DNA from: Schizochytrium sp. TIO01
Taxonomy: Eukaryota; Protista; Bigyra: Labyrinthulomycetes
DNA length: 64,000 nt
Assembly (NCBI GenBank): GCA_004764695.1
Contig: SMSO01000025.1
Span: 434,001 to 498,000, forward strand
Direction of reading: 5' to 3'
In this document: piece after piece, positions 39,205 through 46,644 of the stretch
Position numbering within the stretch: the stretch's first letter is position 1
How the letters are laid out: the number at the start of each line of letters is the position of its first letter
Program-made: the position numbers and the translations under genes
Notes under the pieces: model-generated
The model's input: the letters and a program-made list of their open reading frames with translations, nothing else
What the model was told of the DNA's origin: nothing
The model's database searches: none

Positions 39205-41601
39205 ATGCGGCGCATTGGCACTCACAGGGGCTCAGAAGAGCAGGCGGTCGCGCCAAAGTTGTCGCTTGCTGCAAATGGCGCGGCATCGCGGCATGGCAGT
39301 GCCAGATGGGGCTCGCAAAGGAGGCTCGTGACCGCTGCTGCGATTGTCTTTTGCTGCTTCGTGGCAGTACTGCTTCTCGTGTCTAGGGACGTCGGGACTA
39401 TGCAGCGAAAACAAGAGTTAGCTCTGCTAGATGTTGTCGAAACCTCCGTTGAAAGCGTGGAGCGTGAACTCAGCAGGGACCAGAACTCGAACTTGTTGGA
39501 TTCCAAGACTGACTCGAAAGTAGATACAACGAGCTCTGATGATTTGTCAAGTTTAAAGAATTCTGCGGTGCCTGCTAACGTTGATACTTGGAAAGGTGAG
39601 TCCGAGCTTACCCGTACAATGACCTTGCCGCTGAAGACACCACCTGAAAGTGGAACACGGAGTGCCAGTCACGAAGAAATCTCTGAAGGTGACACCACAA
39701 GCGAAAATGACATTACAAGTGGGGACTCTGCGAGTGATAATTTCTCTAATCGAGATGATGGCCGAAATGATGATCGTGAGGAGAGAAAAGAGGTAACACT
39801 CAGAGGTGGCGCTGAAAATGGAAAATCTGTCAGTCGTGGAGGCCAAGCGTACAGCAACAAGAGTGGCCGCCATCATCCGCAACAACAGCATCTACAGAAA
39901 CGTGACAAGTTTGAGCTACGTAAATACGGTAGTGATGATAAGCTAAGCTCCGGGAACGCAGTGGCAAAACGTGGCCAAAAGGGCTCAGTGCATCCCAGAA
40001 AGTCTTATATCGAGCTGCTAAAACGCGTATTTGCGGCTTCAGTGTGCTATGCAGACGCATTGGAGGGATCCCAACGCTTAGATCTTAAACAGATTTGTTG
40101 CGATGTGTCAGTGAAGCCCCCTTTTGATGATTCCAAGGAAACGGAGGAGGAGAAAGTCTCTATGTGCCTACCAGGACTTGTCGTCATGGGTGCGCAAAAG
40201 GGCGGAACCACCGCGCTGCACTCGTATCTTATGCTGCATCCACAACTCATCCCGCCACGAAAGAAGGAGCTCCATATTTTTGATATTGACCGAAATTTTC
40301 AGGCTTGGCCTGCCCAGCTAAAAACAGCCTTCATACGTTCCGCACCGTCAAAATCCTTACTTGGTAAACTAGCTACCAAGTCGACGTCATCCGTCACCCC
40401 GGGTATTGCCTTTGAATCAACCCCTTCATATATAGCTTCCACCTTAGCTTGTGAGCGTATGTCGACCTTCCTTTCCCCTTGGACAGTTTATGTTGTTATT
40501 TTGCGAGATCCTGTAAAACGATTGTGGTCTGAGTTCAACATGAAAGCTCGTCGTATGCAAAATCAAGACATGACATTGAGGAGTATCGTGGATAATGTTG
40601 ATCAACTTGATTCGTGTTTTATCAACAAACTAGAAGAAGGAGATGATAAGAGCGCATGGATCAACGCCTGTCGCGGAGATCTTCGTCGCGTACTCAAGGG
40701 TAGCTCCTCCAAAATCTCTCAGGTCATTCGCATCCTCTCCAAGCCAGATTATGCTCCCAAATTCTATGAACGCTGCCTCAAGGATGTGGAAGATATGACC
40801 TTTGAAGATTTGCGTGATTGCGCTCGTATAGAAGGTGTACTGCGCGAGAAGCTTCCGGATATCCGTGAAGATATCATAAATGAGCAAAAATTTCTCCAGC
40901 CCTGCATGCAAATCGCTGCAAATAACAAATTTGATGAGTCTCGGAATACAGTGAGCACAGATCTATGGAGCAACGCTGATGACTTATGCGATAAACGCTT
41001 GGAAGAGCAGTTTTGTGCTCACTGTAGCAAGAACCCTAAACCAGCAAAGTGCTGGCAAAGTTGTTGGGACAGCCGCTTCGAAGAAATATCCGCTGCTGCC
41101 TCAGAAATGGGCTGCCAACGCTTGACACGGAATAGTACCTACCCACCACGGAAAATTCGCACTAATTCTGCTTGCGCTGGAAAGCTTTGTTCTTGTTATC
41201 CTGCAGCTGCGAACATGGCTGATATCTCGAAGAACTTTTTATGGCGCGGTCTTTACTATCCGCAAGTTGAGCAATGTCTGCGCTATATTCCTCGTTCTCA
41301 AATTATCTTCCTCGACAACGATGACTTGCGCCGCAACCCACAAGATGCTCTCCACCAGATTACACATAAGCTAGGCGTCTCTTCCCTACCTTATGGAGAC
41401 ACTGGTTATACTTATAAAGATGCAGAGGAGGAATTTAACCGCAAATACCCAGAATTCGGAACGACAACAGGCTGGTCTGCTGAAGGTCTATCCTCTTTGC
41501 CGATGCCCGGAGATATTGAACTCATGCTTAGACAGTTCTATAGCAAACCAAACAAGTTGCTCTTCAAACTCATTGGACGGAACTTCGACCATTGGCTGTA
41601 A
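39205..41601 (+). CDS. Type II membrane (Golgi-type) PAPS-dependent sulfotransferase, heparan sulfate 3-O/N-sulfotransferase-like fold
   Basis: N-terminal TM (AAAIVFCCFVAVLLLV), long stem, 5'-PSB loop GAQKGGTTAL, KELHIFD, ESTPSY, 3'-PB motif ILRDPVKRLWS, GLYYPQV, and C-terminal LRQFYSKPN..L..LIG. Confidence 0.88.
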   Translation: MRRIGTHRGSEEQAVAPKLSLAANGAASRHGSARWGSQRRLVTAAAIVFCCFVAVLLLVSRDVGTMQRKQELALLDVVETSVESVERELSRDQNSNLLDSKTDSKVDTTSSDDLSSLKNSAVPANVDTWKGESELTRTMTLPLKTPPESGTRSASHEEISEGDTTSENDITSGDSASDNFSNRDDGRNDDREERKEVTLRGGAENGKSVSRGGQAYSNKSGRHHPQQQHLQKRDKFELRKYGSDDKLSSGNAVAKRGQKGSVHPRKSYIELLKRVFAASVCYADALEGSQRLDLKQICCDVSVKPPFDDSKETEEEKVSMCLPGLVVMGAQKGGTTALHSYLMLHPQLIPPRKKELHIFDIDRNFQAWPAQLKTAFIRSAPSKSLLGKLATKSTSSVTPGIAFESTPSYIASTLACERMSTFLSPWTVYVVILRDPVKRLWSEFNMKARRMQNQDMTLRSIVDNVDQLDSCFINKLEEGDDKSAWINACRGDLRRVLKGSSSKISQVIRILSKPDYAPKFYERCLKDVEDMTFEDLRDCARIEGVLREKLPDIREDIINEQKFLQPCMQIAANNKFDESRNTVSTDLWSNADDLCDKRLEEQFCAHCSKNPKPAKCWQSCWDSRFEEISAAASEMGCQRLTRNSTYPPRKIRTNSACAGKLCSCYPAAANMADISKNFLWRGLYYPQVEQCLRYIPRSQIIFLDNDDLRRNPQDALHQITHKLGVSSLPYGDTGYTYKDAEEEFNRKYPEFGTTTGWSAEGLSSLPMPGDIELMLRQFYSKPNKLLFKLIGRNFDHWL

Positions 41602-42570
41602 ATTGATATCAGCCTTTGAAAACCCTGCCTACTTCCTTCCCCGTCATAAATGCAAGTGGGCCCTGTGTTTTTCCCCTGTTGGCTTTTTCTTTCTCTGTGT
41701 CTGCCTATTGTCGAGACTGAAAACTAATCTAGCGAATCGCTAGTTACTCTAAGAGACATTTGTTTTGCACCGACACGAGCACTAGTTGCTGTCTCTAGAA
41801 ACACATGATACACATTACGTGATTCACCTGACGCTAGTATAAGCGCGTCTGCTAACACATGAGGTCAGCGTAGTAGAATGTTTTGCTGTGTCTAGCCACA
41901 ACAAGTAATGACTTTTTTTATTTGTGTGTTTTAATTAGTAAGAAAACAAACAAACTTCTAATCGCATGCCCTTTTCCTCCTGTACATTTTATGGCTCCCG
42001 ATCCTGCATAGAGCCTCTTATTAACTTACAATGTGAATAACATACTGGTTGGTCCTGATCTGAGAAAATAAGCACCAAGTGAAGCGTCTGTGCATTCATG
42101 TTGAGAGACTCCTCGAAGCGAACCAACAACAAAAATTTAGGATACACATTTTTTTTTCAAATATACATTCCTACCATTTCTCAAATCTTTTAATACTGTA
42201 AGATTCACTAAGAAAGGAACTCCTCCTCCAAATTCGTTTACTTTGTTTTTTCTTCTGAAGCAAATGAACGGGAGAACAGAGTGAGTGAAATGGTAAATAG
42301 ATTCAAAGTGTTCAGCAAGTTTTGTAAAAAAGGTGATGCCTAGTACCCTAACAAGTGCAAAAATTCATGCATAGCACACAAGGATATGTAGCTGAAATTA
42401 AGAACAATCAAGGGAGATACACGACGTGAGAAACAGGATTTACCTTCTTTAAGCTAAAGAGCATGCACAAAGACAGGGTCTGTAGATACGAAAGTGATTA
42501 GCAGTTTGGCAGATTTTACGGGCATGCACAAAGGACACAATGTTGAAGCTCTTGTGAACGTTTGATTGCT

Positions 42571-44469
42571 TTACTTGGCAAGGTTGCCGATGTGGTAACG
42601 TTGCAAGAGAGTAGGGACAGTGGACGGGTGTTGGGGTCCGGCGATAGCCTCAGTGGCGTCCTTGCCACCCCAGTTAATGATAGCGTTGTCACCACCCTGG
42701 TGAAGGTCCAAATAAGTGGTCACATCGTAAACCTTGTTCTTGACAATGATCCAAAGAGAATCCTTGGTGTTGTGCTTGGCAACCTGCTCGGCAGTGTACA
42801 CATTTTTAGCCTCCTCGGCAACATTGCTGGGCTCCTCGATGGCATCATCAGCTGCGGAGGACACAGGCTTGGACAGAACCTTGCGCTCCACCTTGCGCTC
42901 AAGCGAGAGCGGGGTTGCGCGGCGCTTGAAGCGGACCATGTTAGGTCCCTTAGGGGGCACGACCATGGCTTCATAGTCCGGCTCCGGGAATGGAGTTACA
43001 AGCTCGAGCTCATAGGTAGCCAAAATAACTGAAAGGATCGTGCGGACCTGCATGAAAGCAAAGGTCTCACCCATGCAAGTGTGCAATCCAGCACCGAACC
43101 CAATAAAGCTGTACGGCTTGAGCTTAGCGATGTTGAAGTCATCCCAGCGAGAGGGATCAAACTCATCCGGGTTCTCAAAGACCTCCGGGAGTCTCTGTGC
43201 AATGGCGTTAGAGACCATAGCACGGTGGCCCGCAGGAATGTAAGTGCCGTCCGGCATGGTGATGGGCTTCATGACCTGGCGCATGAGCATGATGAGAGGG
43301 GGGTGCATGCGAATTGCCTCCTTGACAACCTTGTACATTTCAACCTCCTCCTTTACGACATCGTGCGATACCTTGCCGTCCGCAAAGTCACCAGGGGTCT
43401 CCTCGAGCGAGCACATCTCATCAAGCACCTTGTCCATAACCTTGCTACCCTTGCTGCGTTGGTCCTCAAGCAGGAACAGGAGCGACCAGGTGCTCACAAT
43501 GGAGGAAGTGTGCTGGCCAGCGAAGAGCGCAGCAAGAATCATTCCTGCGATCTCATCATCAGTGAACTTAGTACCATCAGAGTATGTGAACTCCATAAGA
43601 GTTTTGATCATGTCGTTGCGAGAGGCAGCTGCTTCGGGGTCAGATCTGCGCTTGGCAAGAATACGTCCAAAGAGGGCAGAGATCTCAATACGAGCGTGGT
43701 CGCGGATCTTGTGGGCTTCAATGGGGGCGTTGGGGAAGAACACAGAGAGCGGGGTGAGGCCGTTATCGAGGTGGGCGTAGAGTGTAGACATCTCCTTGAA
43801 CATCTCGCCACGAATCTCAGGACCCAAAAGCGTAGCACTGGCAGTGTTGATAATGAGTTCAGCGAAGCACTTGTGAAGGTCAATTGTTCCACTCTCACCC
43901 CAGTGGGAGTTCAGGTAGTCCTTCGTCTCCTTGGCAATCATAGGCGGGTAGTTCTTGAGCACGGAAGGCCGCAGAGAACGGCCCAGAGCACGCATCTGTT
44001 GGCGACGCTTCTTGAGCGGGGAGTCATACACGACGCCCTTGCCGAAGATGGGCTTCATGAAACGGTAAGGGCGAGCCTGATCCATCTCCTCGTCGGTGGC
44101 CTCGAAGAAGACCTTGTGGGCGTCGGCACCAATCAGAAAGGTACATTTCTCGGCAACCATGTCGATCGTAAACACGTTTCCGCATTCCTTGTGACCTTTA
44201 CGGACAAATCCAAGAGGATCTGCGGCAAACCCAATAAAGTTGCCGACCACAGGGATGTTTGAGCTGAAGGTTGGGGGCAAGTGGTAGCCGGCAGGAGCCT
44301 TGTCCTTGGTGGCCAGGCGGTAGAGAGTAATGAATGCGGCAGCAGCGACAATAATCACAGCCACAAGGGTTCCAACCCAGCCTCCGACAGTCCAGGCGAA
44401 TCCAAGGGCTCCCGAGGACTCAATCTGAGCGCCAACATCTGCAGCAGAGCAGATCACAGCAGACACCAT
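42571..44469 (-). CDS. CYP51: Sterol 14-alpha-demethylase (CYP51) fused to a C-terminal cytochrome b5 domain
   Basis: 632 aa: N-terminal TM anchor; CYP51 signatures YRFMKPIFGKGVVYD and AALFAGQHTSS, ExxR (EAIRMHPP), heme motif FGAGLHTCMG; ~38 aa linker; b5 domain YTAEQVAKHN..DSLWIIVKNKVYDVT.YLDLHQGG...GGKDAT....PQHP...YHIG. Confidence 0.95.
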   Translation of the reverse strand: MVSAVICSAADVGAQIESSGALGFAWTVGGWVGTLVAVIIVAAAAFITLYRLATKDKAPAGYHLPPTFSSNIPVVGNFIGFAADPLGFVRKGHKECGNVFTIDMVAEKCTFLIGADAHKVFFEATDEEMDQARPYRFMKPIFGKGVVYDSPLKKRRQQMRALGRSLRPSVLKNYPPMIAKETKDYLNSHWGESGTIDLHKCFAELIINTASATLLGPEIRGEMFKEMSTLYAHLDNGLTPLSVFFPNAPIEAHKIRDHARIEISALFGRILAKRRSDPEAAASRNDMIKTLMEFTYSDGTKFTDDEIAGMILAALFAGQHTSSIVSTWSLLFLLEDQRSKGSKVMDKVLDEMCSLEETPGDFADGKVSHDVVKEEVEMYKVVKEAIRMHPPLIMLMRQVMKPITMPDGTYIPAGHRAMVSNAIAQRLPEVFENPDEFDPSRWDDFNIAKLKPYSFIGFGAGLHTCMGETFAFMQVRTILSVILATYELELVTPFPEPDYEAMVVPPKGPNMVRFKRRATPLSLERKVERKVLSKPVSSAADDAIEEPSNVAEEAKNVYTAEQVAKHNTKDSLWIIVKNKVYDVTTYLDLHQGGDNAIINWGGKDATEAIAGPQHPSTVPTLLQRYHIGNLAK

Positions 44470-46644
44470 TTTCTTGACGATCTAGTACGTGGTTTCTGAT
44501 AAACTTGAATTAAGGTTTGGCTTTAGATACGTCGCTATCGTTACCAATCCTGAGATACGATAGCACAGTCAAGCAGCACAAAGGATGTGTACGTTTGTTT
44601 GTTTCTTGGTGATTATGTATAGAGTAGAACAAGCAAGAGAGATCCTGAATCCCTCCCACACAAGTTAAAACAACAACCTTCAAGGATTCTGCGACCCCTG
44701 CGTTGTCTACGCAAGAGGCAAATTAAAAACGCACGTATGCACGCGCGCAGACTAGCCAGTAAGTTTGCAAGCAAGCAAGCGAGCGAGCGAGCGATCGAGC
44801 GATCGATCTGCCCCGGCCGCTGCTGATTCAGGTCTGCCACCTGGGCTTAAGCGGCCGCTACTTTTTGCAGTCTATAGCCTACTTACACCCTCCATTCTCT
44901 ACTGTGCCTCCCCCTATACTCTACTTCGAGCCCTTCTTTACCTCACTTTACGTTCCACTATAACCCACTTGTGCCTCAGTCAGTTATCATTCATTCATTT
45001 GTTCTCTAATTATCGTATCATCGTCACTTTTTTTCACAGCTTTTTATTATGACGCCAACTAACAAAAGTCCTTTTTATGCTTTCCACCTTATCTCCCATA
45101 ATAATTGCCCACACAATAACCTTTCTACTTAAGGTGCTCTTCTCCGCCATGATCGCGCAAGCGTGAAAACCCCTTCCGCAAACAGGGGGTATATTGCAAG
45201 TATTATCGGTATCTGTGAACGTACACCCATAAAGTCTTATATTACCGGGATGCGCATGTGTGGGGGATGACGTGCGGAGTGCCCCCCGAATGCCGTCGCG
45301 CGCTTGCGATTATCGGTTTGATACGGGTTTAAGGAGGGCTCAAGGGACGCCAGCTCGACGCAGCTGCTTGCGCACTCCCCTTTCGGCCGTCTTTGACGAT
45401 GAAGTCGAGGGCAATCTCCGCCCCGAAGAAACCAAGGACGCCCAAGGACGCTTTCCCGGCGGCACCTGCTCCTCACCACGACCTTGTCAGCCCTCGCTGA
45501 CCAGCTAGCTGCCGGCCTTGACGGGCTTCGAGGCTGCTTGATCGTCATACATACACGAATTCCGTCATCGCTGTATTACACTAAATGAGCGATTTAGGGA
45601 TACATTTTTCTATTTTATTGCTAAATTTATTTAGAACTATAAACTTTGAGGTTCATTCGATCATTCGTTCACTCCTTTATACACATTTACAATGATAAGA
45701 AATAGAAATAGAAGAATTGGCGTTGAAAGGTGCAGTCTTAGGCAAACAAAAGCATGAGCGGAGATGGCCAAGAGGCAACTAGGGAGGTACCTCGGTGCTT
45801 GCCTAGTTTGGAAAGTAATGGAGTAGTATTCTGGGGAAATGGGCCAAAAGTAGTGTCTAACAGCATGCACGAGTGGACCTTTATTTCTATTGCATTTATG
45901 CCCGAGTTCGTCAATGTGTTTGATTCTGTTTATATTTATTGGTTATGAATATATGAAGTGGAAAACTGATGAAATAGTAGGACTACCTATGTAGTTCAGG
46001 TAATAGCAACTTGGCACTTGGGCATGTCAGGTACTACTGCGCAGGTACTACTGTAACTGCTAAGTGGATTGCACACAGGGTGGTGTGCAAAGGATACCAT
46101 CATGAGCTCAGAACTTGAGCCTCGAAGGGTGGCGCAGAAAAGGCCGCCGCTCACTGAGATGACGAGGAGAAGAATTGTATCCAAGCTCTGTTATGAAATC
46201 TGCCTTGCAGTGCTGCCATGAAATAATGTTGAGTCTCGAAGGGATCATATTCGGTTTACAATTTTCAACATTAATATTCTTAGAAAAAAAATTTTTAAAT
46301 GAAATGAATTTTTTTTGTGATGTGAGAGGAAAAACTCGAAGGAAAAACTTTTAATTAAAAAAAGGTGCGCGATGACGCAACGTGAAATAAACGAGGGTCG
46401 TTAAGCCATTAATTTAGACCCTTTTAACTAAAGTGGTATCAATATAGACCCTTTTAAAATGGCAGAGTTGCATATAGGCCTTTTTGTGGATGCGAAATTT
46501 AGTCGATGAAAATCCAACGAAACGTATAAATACGTTCGATTAAATCAAACGAAATGAGTTCTCACATGGACAGCCTCGGCGACGACTCCACAGACTTGGT
46601 CTGCGAGGAATCGGAGTGGCCTTGCGAAGATTGCGAGGCCGGCC

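Follow-up and report, generated by a model that had tools for sequence, protein, structure and literature searches.

CYP51 (sterol 14α-demethylase), which azole drugs and fungicides target, is the most widely conserved cytochrome P450. Electron supply to the eukaryotic enzyme is taken to be the task of NADPH-P450 reductase (CPR), with cytochrome b5 as an optional participant. The textbook arrangement places b5 on the proximal face of the P450, and the potential of a classical b5 is too high for giving the first electron to a P450. In Arabidopsis, the electron carrier of CYP51A2 is CB5LP (At1g60660; Sci Adv 2025), an N-terminally anchored b5 that binds heme via two His, is reducible by CBR1 and ATR1/2, stimulates obtusifoliol 14α-demethylation, and has been described as exclusive to plants and essential for plant CYP51 (PMC13155568). 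In Methylococcus capsulatus, CYP51fx is a C-terminal CYP51-ferredoxin fusion with a linker of 20-30 residues, an arrangement present in more than 50 bacteria, and it needs a separate reductase (PMC7947880).

The gene analysed here, from Schizochytrium sp. TIO01, encodes a CYP51 domain and a b5 domain in one chain. It resembles the plant and algal pair of CYP51A2 and CB5LP in the plant-like signature of its CYP51, the GPQH(P) motif of its b5, the N-terminal anchor and the lack of a tail anchor, but differs from this pair in being a single polypeptide whose CYP51 domain separates anchor and b5, in belonging to a heterotrophic stramenopile, in bearing HQGG rather than HPGG in the main fusion clade, and in having no biochemistry to its name. 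Like CYP51fx (PDB identifier 6mcw), which is the second-best PDB match of its P450 domain, the protein carries a small electron-carrier domain C-terminal of CYP51 via a linker, here of 41 residues, and occurs in many species; CYP51fx, however, is bacterial and soluble with an iron-sulfur ferredoxin, whereas the protist fusion is eukaryotic, membrane-anchored and joined to a heme b5, which would make two hemes. A b5 covalently joined to the ER oxidase that it supplies is also seen in lipid oxidases such as the front-end desaturases and the sphingolipid α-hydroxylase Scs7p (PDB identifier 4zr0, among the PDB matches of the fused b5), and the genome encodes many b5 fusions (b5 matches in frames of 500-650 residues), but the acceptors in these lipid oxidases are di-iron enzymes and not P450s, and their b5 is of the canonical HPGG...GHS/xH type.

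Two further systems share part of this design. As in P450 BM3 (CYP102A1), a P450 is joined to a redox partner that docks on its proximal face (by prediction in the present case), but BM3 carries a whole diflavin reductase and is self-sufficient, whereas the CYP51-b5 fusion still needs a separate flavoprotein reductase; a self-sufficient P450 of the BM3 or CYP116B type was rejected, as the chain contains only p450 and Cyt-b5 domains and no flavin reductase domain. The MAPR proteins (Dap1/PGRMC1), which bind and activate CYP51, are likewise b5-fold heme proteins partnering CYP51 but are without the bis-His ligation of the fused b5. A MAPR identity was rejected because the fused domain keeps both His and can be aligned with classical b5s over its full length, and the MAPR-like domains encoded by the same genome (L033-L036), which are without the His pair, are clearly distinct from it. 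No description of a CYP51-b5 fusion was found in the open-access full-text literature, subscription papers and P450 nomenclature pages being outside the scope of the search, and within these limits the tentative statement of the first-pass annotation that no characterised eukaryotic CYP51-b5 fusion is known still stands. What is new here is that the fused b5 carries GPQHP, the hallmark motif of CB5LP.

Domain architecture and expression of the gene

The features of the gene are collected in Table 1, with positions counted in the window, i.e., the whole stretch of 64,000 nucleotides that was analysed (GenBank assembly GCA_004764695.1, contig SMSO01000025.1, positions 434,001 to 498,000). The best PDB match of the P450 domain is a CYP51 (PDB identifier 6q2c) with an E-value of 8.4e-118 over residues 62-517, the top 55 matches are all CYP51s, and non-CYP51 P450s begin at an E-value of 1e-23. 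The motifs that mark CYP51 are YxxF/LxxPxFGxxVxYD in the B'-helix, GQHTS in helix I, FGxGxHxCxGE in the heme loop and ExxR. All of these signatures are present in the fusion protein, where ExxR reads EAIR at residues 384-387 of the translation, and they are invariant or nearly so among 32 aligned fusions. The segment PYRFMKPIFGKGVVYDS represents the CYP51 signature of the B'-helix and B'-C loop, with Phe137 at the substrate-preference position. Judged by its sequence, the P450 domain belongs to the CYP51 family, and sterol 14α-demethylation itself is inferred with indirect support only. In a related Schizochytrium, the orthologous 14α-demethylation step is azole-sensitive (PMC10174431).

Table 1. 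Positions in the window of the features of the CYP51-b5 fusion gene and its product
Feature	Position	Strand	Evidence
CYP51-b5 fusion CDS, complete, intronless; 632 residues plus stop at 42571-42573	42571..44469	-	Open reading frame list; Pfam p450 and Cyt-b5; coordinates checked by translation
Fusion mRNA, approximate extent; 5' UTR ~325-358 nt, 3' UTR ~150-400 nt	42174..44827	-	Transcript-like contigs
N-terminal transmembrane anchor, residues 32-53 (VGTLVAVIIVAAAAFITLYRLA)	44311..44376	-	Helix 32-53 in AF2 model; translation
CYP51 (sterol 14α-demethylase) P450 domain, residues 66-509	42943..44274	-	Pfam PF00067, E 5e-58; best solved relatives all CYP51s
CYP51 B'-helix/B'-C-loop signature PYRFMKPIFGKGVVYDS, residues 134-150	44020..44070	-	Translation; Y135, F137, M138, P140, F142 and G143 invariant in 32-fusion alignment
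Helix I CYP51 signature ALFAGQHTSSI, residues 314-324	43498..43530	-	Translation; Q319, H320, T321 and S322 nearly invariant
Heme-thiolate loop FGAGLHTCMGE, residues 458-468, Cys465	43066..43098	-	Translation; invariant in fusion alignment; centre of predicted b5 docking site (interface 458-469)
Flexible linker, residues 518-558, 41 residues, 14 charged	42796..42918	-	pLDDT <50 at residues 536-553; unconserved, length varies across family; translation
Cytochrome b5 domain assigned to the CB5LP type, residues 559-630	42580..42795	-	Pfam PF00173, E 1.4e-21; PDB b5 matches; HMM bits
HQGG, residues 590-593, first axial His590	42691..42702	-	Pro->Gln variant of HPGG, specific to main fusion clade
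GPQHP, residues 611-615, second axial His614, CB5LP hallmark motif	42625..42639	-	Translation; motif comparison

The first-pass annotation had described a single uninterrupted frame that leads from a CYP51 domain ending near VRFKRR, through a charged linker of about 38 residues, into a complete b5 with both axial His and no tail anchor of its own. The reading frame is indeed open throughout, without an internal stop and with an in-frame TAG five codons upstream of the ATG, and the domain search that had been proposed finds both p450 (66-509) and Cyt-b5 (559-630) in one chain. The P450 ends with NMVRFKRR at residues 510-517 (nucleotides 42919-42942), the linker that follows is charged as described and somewhat longer than estimated, and, since the protein ends two residues past the b5 domain, a tail anchor is lacking. 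In alignments with solved b5s (PDB identifiers 2ibj, 3ner and 3mus), His590 and His614 match the axial His, and neither they nor the P450 Cys and ExxR vary among the 32 aligned fusion orthologues; the b5 fold is modelled confidently at residues 556-630. Pfam and PDB alignments thus agree on a bis-His cytochrome b5, for which heme binding and redox activity are inferred from these residues.

Reads across the P450-b5 junction had also been suggested as a check, and transcript-like contigs bear the fusion out. Contigs X1 (2620 nt, window 42174-44794) and X10 (2412 nt, window 42422-44827) each span the entire open reading frame, which shows no joints and no indels in such contigs; the flanking intergenic DNA is uncovered, the depth at the fusion gene is ~20-fold that of the neighbouring gene, and the junction is present in contigs from four runs belonging to four studies. 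The fusion is expressed as a single unspliced transcript, with the proviso that the runs behind these contigs are only guessed, not recorded, as RNA. A spliced leader at the 5' end of the fusion was rejected, as the very deep 30-nt contigs at 44767-44796 represent a (GCTC)n(GCTT)n simple repeat.

The fused b5 and the spread of the fusion

The second-His motif of canonical b5 domains is (V/I/A)GHS. At this site, every fused b5 module has G[PDE]QHP, and a GPQHP-type motif was not found in any of the 32 other b5 domains of the same genome. The published CB5LP sequences, which were compared by eye only, have GPQH in Arabidopsis (AtCB5LP), rice, Chlamydomonas and Porphyridium, and this motif is absent in the canonical CB5s listed alongside. 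The first-pass annotation had listed both HQGG and PQHP, and both are present, but it did not recognise the significance of GPQHP as the CB5LP hallmark; this is the diagnostic feature, whereas HQGG is a derived trait of the main fusion clade. The topology is also that of CB5LP: a transmembrane helix lies N-terminal of the b5 and there is no C-terminal anchor, although the CYP51 domain sits between them, and the free-standing GPQHP b5 proteins comprise 54 with an N-terminal and none with a C-terminal transmembrane helix. An HMM of the CB5LP type was built from 31 free N-anchored GPQHP b5 domains of database proteins (streptophyte and green algal ones included), which stand in for the published CB5LPs, and a canonical HMM from 38 domains. 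The fused b5 scores 107.7 bits on the former compared with 88.5 on the latter, canonical b5 domains reach a maximum of 93.6 bits on the CB5LP-type HMM, and 28 of 31 fused b5 domains score 11 to 40 bits higher on the CB5LP-type than on the canonical HMM. The fused domains also fall outside the canonical group in a b5 tree (SH-aLRT 92), though with 80 columns this tree is weakly resolved and a careful search was left unfinished. By motif, HMM and topology, and without a direct alignment to AtCB5LP, the fused b5 is assigned to the CB5LP type.

An architecture survey across labyrinthulomycetes and other protists, likewise suggested at the outset, shows that the fusion is shared by ~40 close relatives down to 46% identity, with Hondaea fermentalgiana at 83%, in keeping with a labyrinthulomycete origin, and that more distant fusions exist, including a Bigelowiella natans cluster at 41% (orthologues drawn from NCBI, JGI, ENA, Logan, EukProt and MMETSP). 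The named carriers are Hondaea, B. natans and an entry with the doubtful label 'Batrachochytrium salamandrivorans BASA81', and some members of the family bear two tandem b5 domains. In a tree of the P450 domain only, 31 of 32 fusions group in one clade (SH-aLRT 100), and the tree requires five changes of the fusion label, at least three of which are forced by starred branches. The poorly resolved b5-domain tree is compatible both with a single ancient fusion followed by losses and with several fusions that arose independently. Several CYP51 lineages show the same pairing with a CB5LP-type b5, and both domains of the fusion are under purifying selection in the 32-protein alignment. The fusion family is old and widespread, also outside stramenopiles, and is not peculiar to this organism. 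A search with the b5 domain alone returned only fusion-gene fragments in which P450 C-terminal tails are retained, with no free-standing HQGG-type b5 among the results, and the ESM Atlas yielded generic CYP51 and b5 clusters only, with no architecture information.

A probable electron relay and competing explanations

Beyond what is observed here, namely the architecture, its expression as a single transcript, its conservation, the CB5LP-type b5 and the presence of reductases, we think it likely that the protein is an ER-anchored two-heme CYP51 whose tethered CB5LP-type b5 passes electrons, although there are no biochemical data for any CYP51-b5 fusion. The N-terminal transmembrane helix would anchor the protein in the ER, followed by the CYP51 domain, a flexible tether of ~40 residues and the C-terminal b5. 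NADPH-P450 reductase, NADH-b5 reductase or both would reduce the b5, and the genome encodes these two (a canonical CPR with a 692-residue open reading frame as a separate gene on another contig, and b5-reductase-like genes). The b5 would then swing against the proximal face of a CYP51 domain in the same or a neighbouring molecule, right over the Cys465 loop, to hand on electrons for the three consecutive monooxygenation steps by which the 14α-methyl group is lost. In every cycle it would contribute the second electron at a minimum, though the direction of transfer and the electron count are inferred, and in evolutionary terms the protein would be a fused form of the two-protein CYP51 and CB5LP system of plants and algae. 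Such a relay, which the first-pass annotation had inferred, is much better grounded given the CB5LP type of the b5, the proximal-face complex model and the CPR and b5-reductase-like genes, though these are no biochemical proof.

In the complex model, the heme edge of the b5 sits against the proximal face of the P450 above the Cys465 loop with a score of 0.81, the best control scoring 0.01; among solved complexes 51 of 78 attain this mark, among mismatched pairs two of 108. The docking runs share at least 96% of contacts with a partner pLDDT of at least 90, and the predicted interface brings b5 residues 588-593 and 611-618 against P450 residues 458-469 and the C-helix, with 156-172 among the predicted P450 contacts. 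The score is the predictor's own confidence and the proximal-face pose may merely echo what the predictor has learned, and the docking geometry is an inference. Clade-fixed substitutions are enriched at interface positions (7 of 28 versus 54 of 458, p=0.035), but the signal is weak and the clade's long stem is a confounder. A b5 docked in this manner would occupy the site needed by CPR.

A stronger variant of the relay makes the b5 the obligatory conduit for both electrons, received from NADH-b5 reductase (or from CPR acting on the b5) in a dedicated chain, with direct CPR-P450 contact dispensable. This would suit the predicted position of the b5 on the same face that would receive CPR, the replacement by Ile/Leu of the P450-typical Arg of the heme loop (FGxGRHxC), with several proximal residues re-fixed in the fusion clade, and the content of the 64-Mb genome, where the fusion is the only CYP51 and the only P450 joined to a b5 and where neither a free CB5LP-type b5 nor an unfused CYP51 was found. 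Yet the potential of a b5 is as a rule too positive for it to deliver the first electron, and a canonical CPR is encoded here. The plant system points both ways: cb5lp knockout is lethal and 14α-methyl sterols accumulate, but activity is better with NADPH than with NADH and atr mutants accumulate obtusifoliol, which suggests that CPR is still involved, and the midpoint potential of the CB5LP-type b5 is not given in that study (PMC13155568). We regard this stronger variant as unlikely.

It appears very unlikely that the b5 acts on CYP51 mainly by allostery or as a structural element and transfers no net electrons, as has been debated for the stimulation of CYP17A1 lyase activity by b5 or for the binding of MAPR/Dap1 to CYP51. 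For some mammalian P450s, b5 effects that involve no electron transfer have been discussed, and the predicted interface is extensive (56-58 contacts), but both axial His are invariant in all fusion lineages, the domain is a classical bis-His b5 and not a MAPR, unlike L033-L036, and a heme-less double-His mutant of CB5LP neither complemented nor stimulated CYP51A2 (PMC13155568). We give hardly any credence to a third function, in which the b5 chiefly serves other sterol enzymes in trans (C4-methyl oxidase, C5-desaturase) and CYP51 is a mere anchor in a sterol metabolon. These two enzymes are classically b5-dependent, the long flexible linker permits reach to neighbours and tandem b5 domains occur in some family members; against this, more than 30 other b5 domains are available in the genome, the pairing of CB5LP-type b5 with CYP51 recurs across lineages, docking to the protein's own P450 domain is confidently predicted, and the free plant form acts on CYP51 (PMC13155568). 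Finally, nothing was found to support an artefact, in which faulty assembly or sequencing would have joined neighbouring genes or a read-through would not yield a single protein; such an artefact is effectively refuted by the continuous frame, by the identical, indel-free junction in contigs of the four runs, by the ~40 orthologues of the same architecture from six sources and by purifying selection on both domains, and, with single contigs spanning the whole frame, the fusion is no chance read-through, the guessed RNA status of the runs being the sole caveat.

Evolutionary and practical implications

An electron-relaying CYP51 with a tethered CB5LP-type b5 remains our preferred reading. Since the fused b5 is of the CB5LP type, the fusion provides natural, independent 'Rosetta-stone' evidence for the pairing of CYP51 with CB5LP well beyond plants, and its occurrence in protists, together with free N-anchored GPQHP b5s in a brown alga and a heterolobosean, argues for a partnership more ancient and more widely distributed than has been reported. 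We tentatively raise the possibility, without holding it to be probable, that this is an ancient eukaryotic partnership dating back at least to the common ancestor of Archaeplastida and SAR, which persists in plants, green, red and brown algae and some excavates as a pair of separate proteins and in labyrinthulomycetes, chlorarachniophytes and several uncultured marine lineages as one chain, with the b5 of these latter organisms as an obligatory electron gate of sterol 14-demethylation. If the partnership is that ancient, fungi and animals would have secondarily lost a dedicated CYP51 partner, and if the gate is obligatory, the fusion would offer a minimal natural system in which to measure the passage of electrons from b5 to P450.

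The tethered pair makes electron transfer versus allostery measurable at a fixed 1:1 stoichiometry, and the fusion is a template for engineering plant and algal sterol and triterpenoid P450s. The protists that bear it include industrial DHA-producing thraustochytrids, in which redox supply is worth considering when sterol and squalene flux is altered.

The CYP51 and cytochrome b5 domains in one gene

The CYP51 and b5 domains are encoded by a single unbroken reading frame with an in-frame stop five codons 5' of its ATG, and Pfam matches to both domains fall within its 632 aa. The landmarks on which the first-pass annotation had based a CYP51 carrying its own b5, namely the VRFKRR end of the P450 domain, the charged linker, the HQGG and PQHP motifs and the absence of a tail anchor, were all recovered at their claimed positions upon translation. 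The AlphaFold2 model of the protein (mean pLDDT 84, pTM 0.81) has confident P450 and b5 folds. All of the best PDB matches to the P450 part are CYP51s, the first being an obtusifoliol 14alpha-demethylase (6q2c, E 8.4e-118, residues 62-517) and the second the Methylococcus CYP51-ferredoxin fusion (6mcw), and the fused b5 matches classical b5 structures over its full length, with both axial His present.

Coordinates of the fusion gene, its product and the features discussed with it
Feature	Position	Strand	Size	Basis or remark
Fusion reading frame	window 42571-44469	minus	632 aa	ORF listing of the window
TM helix	residues 32-53			AlphaFold2 model
P450 domain	residues 66-509			Pfam, E 5e-58
Disordered stretch	residues 536-553			AlphaFold2 model
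Cyt-b5 domain	residues 559-630			Pfam, E 1.4e-21
Spanning contig, one run	window 42174-44794		2620 nt	entire ORF and UTRs
Spanning contig, another run	window 42422-44827		2412 nt	entire ORF and UTRs
Neighbouring reading frame	window 39205-41601	plus	798 aa	upstream of the CYP51 3' end
(GCTC)n(GCTT)n simple repeat	window 44767-44800			at the CYP51 transcript 5' end
Multi-b5 array	contig C13, 1643025-1646925	minus	frames of 196, 802 and 419 aa	at least nine consecutive canonical b5 domains

Contigs of four public runs, each from a different study and presumed by guess to be RNA, were mapped onto window positions 41000-46000. Single contigs from two of these runs cross the whole fusion ORF with no joints and no indels within it. 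The intergenic DNA on either side has zero contig coverage and the neighbouring reading frame has a contig depth about 20-fold lower than the fusion gene, a pattern that transcriptome assemblies give; although the RNA nature of the runs is a guess, we take the locus to be one genuine, expressed gene. The simple repeat at the 5' end of the transcript draws very deep 30-nt contigs in these runs.

The TIO01 genome (64 Mb in 37 contigs, with the window on contig C24) has about 25 P450 genes and 37 b5-domain matches, and the two domains share a frame only in the fusion gene. No unfused CYP51 paralogue was found in this genome, the fusion gene being its sole CYP51. Elsewhere the genome encodes a canonical NADPH-P450 reductase (692 aa; Flavodoxin_1, FAD_binding_1 and NAD_binding_1), together with several b5-reductase-like genes. 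The multi-b5 array on contig C13 has comparable database proteins in P0166 (11 matched stretches, 1252 aa), P0208, P0239, P0247, P0259, P0265 and P0272.

Distribution and phylogeny of the fusion

The nearest named relative of the fusion protein is that of Hondaea fermentalgiana (83% identity), which identifies the source organism as a thraustochytrid. Among the best 120 database relatives, both Pfam domains are present in the top 38 (46-83% identity) and in two more, and those below about 45% identity are plain CYP51s from diatoms, Nannochloropsis, green algae, plants and Dictyostelia. With about 40 relatives carrying P450 and b5, the architecture survey that the first-pass annotation had suggested establishes that the fusion is not a one-off, and the spanning contigs together with this conserved architecture rule out, for practical purposes, an artefact of merged genes. 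The P450 Cys, the ExxR motif, the CYP51 signatures and both b5 His are invariant in 32 aligned fusions, the linker is unconserved and variable in length, and three family members have a tandem second b5. Taxon labels are known for only a few members.

A tree of the P450 domain alone groups 31 of the 32 fusions in one clade (SH-aLRT 100, stem 0.48). An exhaustive HMMER search identified further, more distant fusions at 37-42% identity, one cluster of which includes a Bigelowiella natans protein (chlorarachniophyte, Rhizaria) and MMETSP transcripts. In the extended tree, this cluster is the weakly supported sister of the main fusion clade and four other fusion lineages are interspersed among unfused CYP51s, so that the fusion label requires five changes; this would follow from a single ancient fusion that was later lost in places, or from fusion having occurred more than once. 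Judged from these comparisons, the CYP51-b5 architecture is that of an old family.

The database protein P0037 (KAH9250934.1, 'Batrachochytrium salamandrivorans BASA81_011322'), which carries a chytrid label, nests deep in the protist CYP51-b5 clade beside an environmental sequence and shows a gap inside helix I; contamination of the BASA81 assembly or a mis-assigned contig within it is the probable explanation. In three others, P0206 (999 aa), P0226 and P0170, CYP51 is preceded by an N-terminal 3beta-hydroxysteroid dehydrogenase/NSDHL-like domain, and these sterol-pathway fusions could be merged gene models.

Relationship of the fused b5 to CB5LP

The main new finding of this analysis, made from sequence, is that the fused b5 is of the CB5LP type. 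Arabidopsis CB5LP, recently shown to be required for plant CYP51A2 (2025, PMC13155568), has a reversed topology with an N-terminal anchor and a C-terminal b5 domain, binds heme via two His, accepts electrons from both CBR1 and ATR1/2 and raises obtusifoliol demethylation 4.6-fold; its double-His mutant gives neither stimulation nor complementation (PMC13155568). In CYP51-fused b5s of every lineage except the database protein P0143, the second axial His lies in G-[PDE]-Q-H-P, a motif absent from 32 other canonical b5 domains translated from the TIO01 genome, which read GHS, IHS, LHK etc. at this position. GPQH is likewise present in the CB5LPs of Arabidopsis, rice, Chlamydomonas (GPQHP) and Porphyridium, and the canonical CB5s listed beside them all read D[VA]GHS or similar (PMC13155568), though these sequences were compared by eye and via database stand-ins without direct alignment. 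HPGG is retained in the Bigelowiella, P0141, P0148 and P0055 fusions, and HQGG is a later change restricted to the main fusion clade.

A profile search with short b5 fragments found many free-standing b5s (100-230 aa, 50-60% identity to the fused domain). Among those with the QHP motif, a TM helix is predicted at the N-terminus in 54 and at the C-terminus in none; the GHS-type matches are tail-anchored. Two HMMs were used for scoring, from 31 free N-anchored QHP domains and 38 canonical domains, respectively. The window b5 domain scores 107.7 bits on the CB5LP-type HMM against 88.5 on the canonical one, and 28 of 31 fused domains prefer the former by 11-40 bits, the exceptions being both P0143 domains, which are canonical, and the second domain of the database fusion P0007. 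On the CB5LP-type HMM no canonical domain exceeds 93.6 bits, and in a b5 tree of weak resolution 37 of the 38 are separated from the QHP domains, both fused and free. No free CB5LP-type b5 was found in the TIO01 genome, where the only copy is fused to the only CYP51.

Named free GPQHP proteins come from Mesotaenium and Spirogloea (streptophyte algae), Auxenochlorella (green), Laminaria (brown) and Willaertia (heterolobosean); the CB5LP type is therefore not confined to plants. Outside Archaeplastida, N-anchored free b5s with GPQHP or GIQHP include P0312 (Willaertia magna), P0358 (Laminaria digitata) and many unnamed proteins of the P03xx series, in conflict with the published plant-exclusivity of CB5LP (PMC13155568). 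P0143 (601 aa) is a CYP51 with two C-terminal b5 domains (HMM differences of -9.7 and -21.1 bits) from a separate region of the CYP51 tree, and its canonical b5 type and position mark it as a fusion that arose independently, with another kind of b5.

Probable electron supply to the fused CYP51

For the complex model, residues 60-520 (P450) and 555-632 (b5) were entered as separate chains together with two hemes. The complex test was passed with a score of 0.81 (best of three controls 0.01), contacts agreeing by at least 96% between runs and partner pLDDT being at least 90. The calibration, which contained no ligands, had 51 of 78 solved complexes and 2 of 108 mismatched pairs at or above this mark. 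The pass may reflect memory of like complexes. In the model, the b5 axial-His loops (588-593, 611-618) lie on the P450 proximal face, contacting the Cys465 loop (458-469), the C-helix (156-172) and residues 452-453, where redox partners classically bind. Q591 and P615, both specific to the family, make some of the tightest contacts in this prediction. Clade-fixed substitutions occur at 7 of 28 P450 contact positions versus 54 of 458 overall (one-sided Fisher p = 0.035), including the invariant R156, P168 and T464, and position 462 has Ile/Leu instead of the usual Arg of FGxGRHxC. This enrichment is suggestive only, because the fusion clade has a long stem. The 41-residue disordered tether is long enough for b5 to reach its own or a neighbour's proximal face.

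We interpret the protein as a probable covalent form of the CYP51 and CB5LP system, although biochemical data are lacking for every CYP51-b5 fusion. In this scheme the tethered b5 would receive electrons from a flavoprotein (CPR using NADPH, b5 reductase using NADH, or both), then dock on the P450 and pass electrons to its heme for the three oxidative steps of CYP51. Classical b5 potentials favour second-electron delivery only, and whether b5 gives the second electron alone or both remains open. In the plant system, NADPH- and NADH-linked chains both contribute (PMC13155568).

It cannot be excluded that the tethered b5 chiefly serves other sterol oxidases in trans, against which stand the recurrent, specific pairing of CB5LP-type b5 with CYP51 and the plentiful other b5 domains of the genome. 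A purely allosteric b5 is unlikely, since the histidines are invariant and a CB5LP mutant that lacks heme does not function in plants (PMC13155568).

As regards substrate, Phe137 at the B'-helix position suggests that the fusion CYP51 prefers C4-monomethyl sterols, obtusifoliol for example. This is consistent with the obtusifoliol 14alpha-demethylase as best PDB match of its P450 part. The mixed cycloartenol/lanosterol pathway described in Schizochytrium is also in line with it (PMC10174431).

The first-pass annotation knew of no characterised eukaryotic CYP51-b5 fusion, and our literature search, which did not cover subscription journals and P450 nomenclature resources, likewise found no description of one. 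A paper on the Schizochytrium sterol pathway names the orthologue CYP51G1 without mention of b5 (PMC10174431), and the CB5LP paper names no fusion other than that of Methylococcus and calls CB5LP plant-exclusive (PMC13155568). However, fusion proteins with both Pfam domains precomputed are already public, including a Hondaea entry titled 'Sterol 14-demethylase, partial' and a JGI entry titled 'cytochrome P450/cytochrome b involved in lipid metabolism'; thus the recognition and interpretation are new, not the sequence. Of the closest systems known, the plant CYP51A2/CB5LP pair has the same parts unfused, bacterial CYP51-ferredoxin fusions embody the same idea with a different carrier, and b5-fused desaturases and hydroxylases share the carrier fold but differ in acceptor and b5 subtype. 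We class CYP51-b5 as a P450 fused to a redox partner, in which the partner is new; the added value of the fusion is the evolutionary evidence it provides on CYP51 electron supply.
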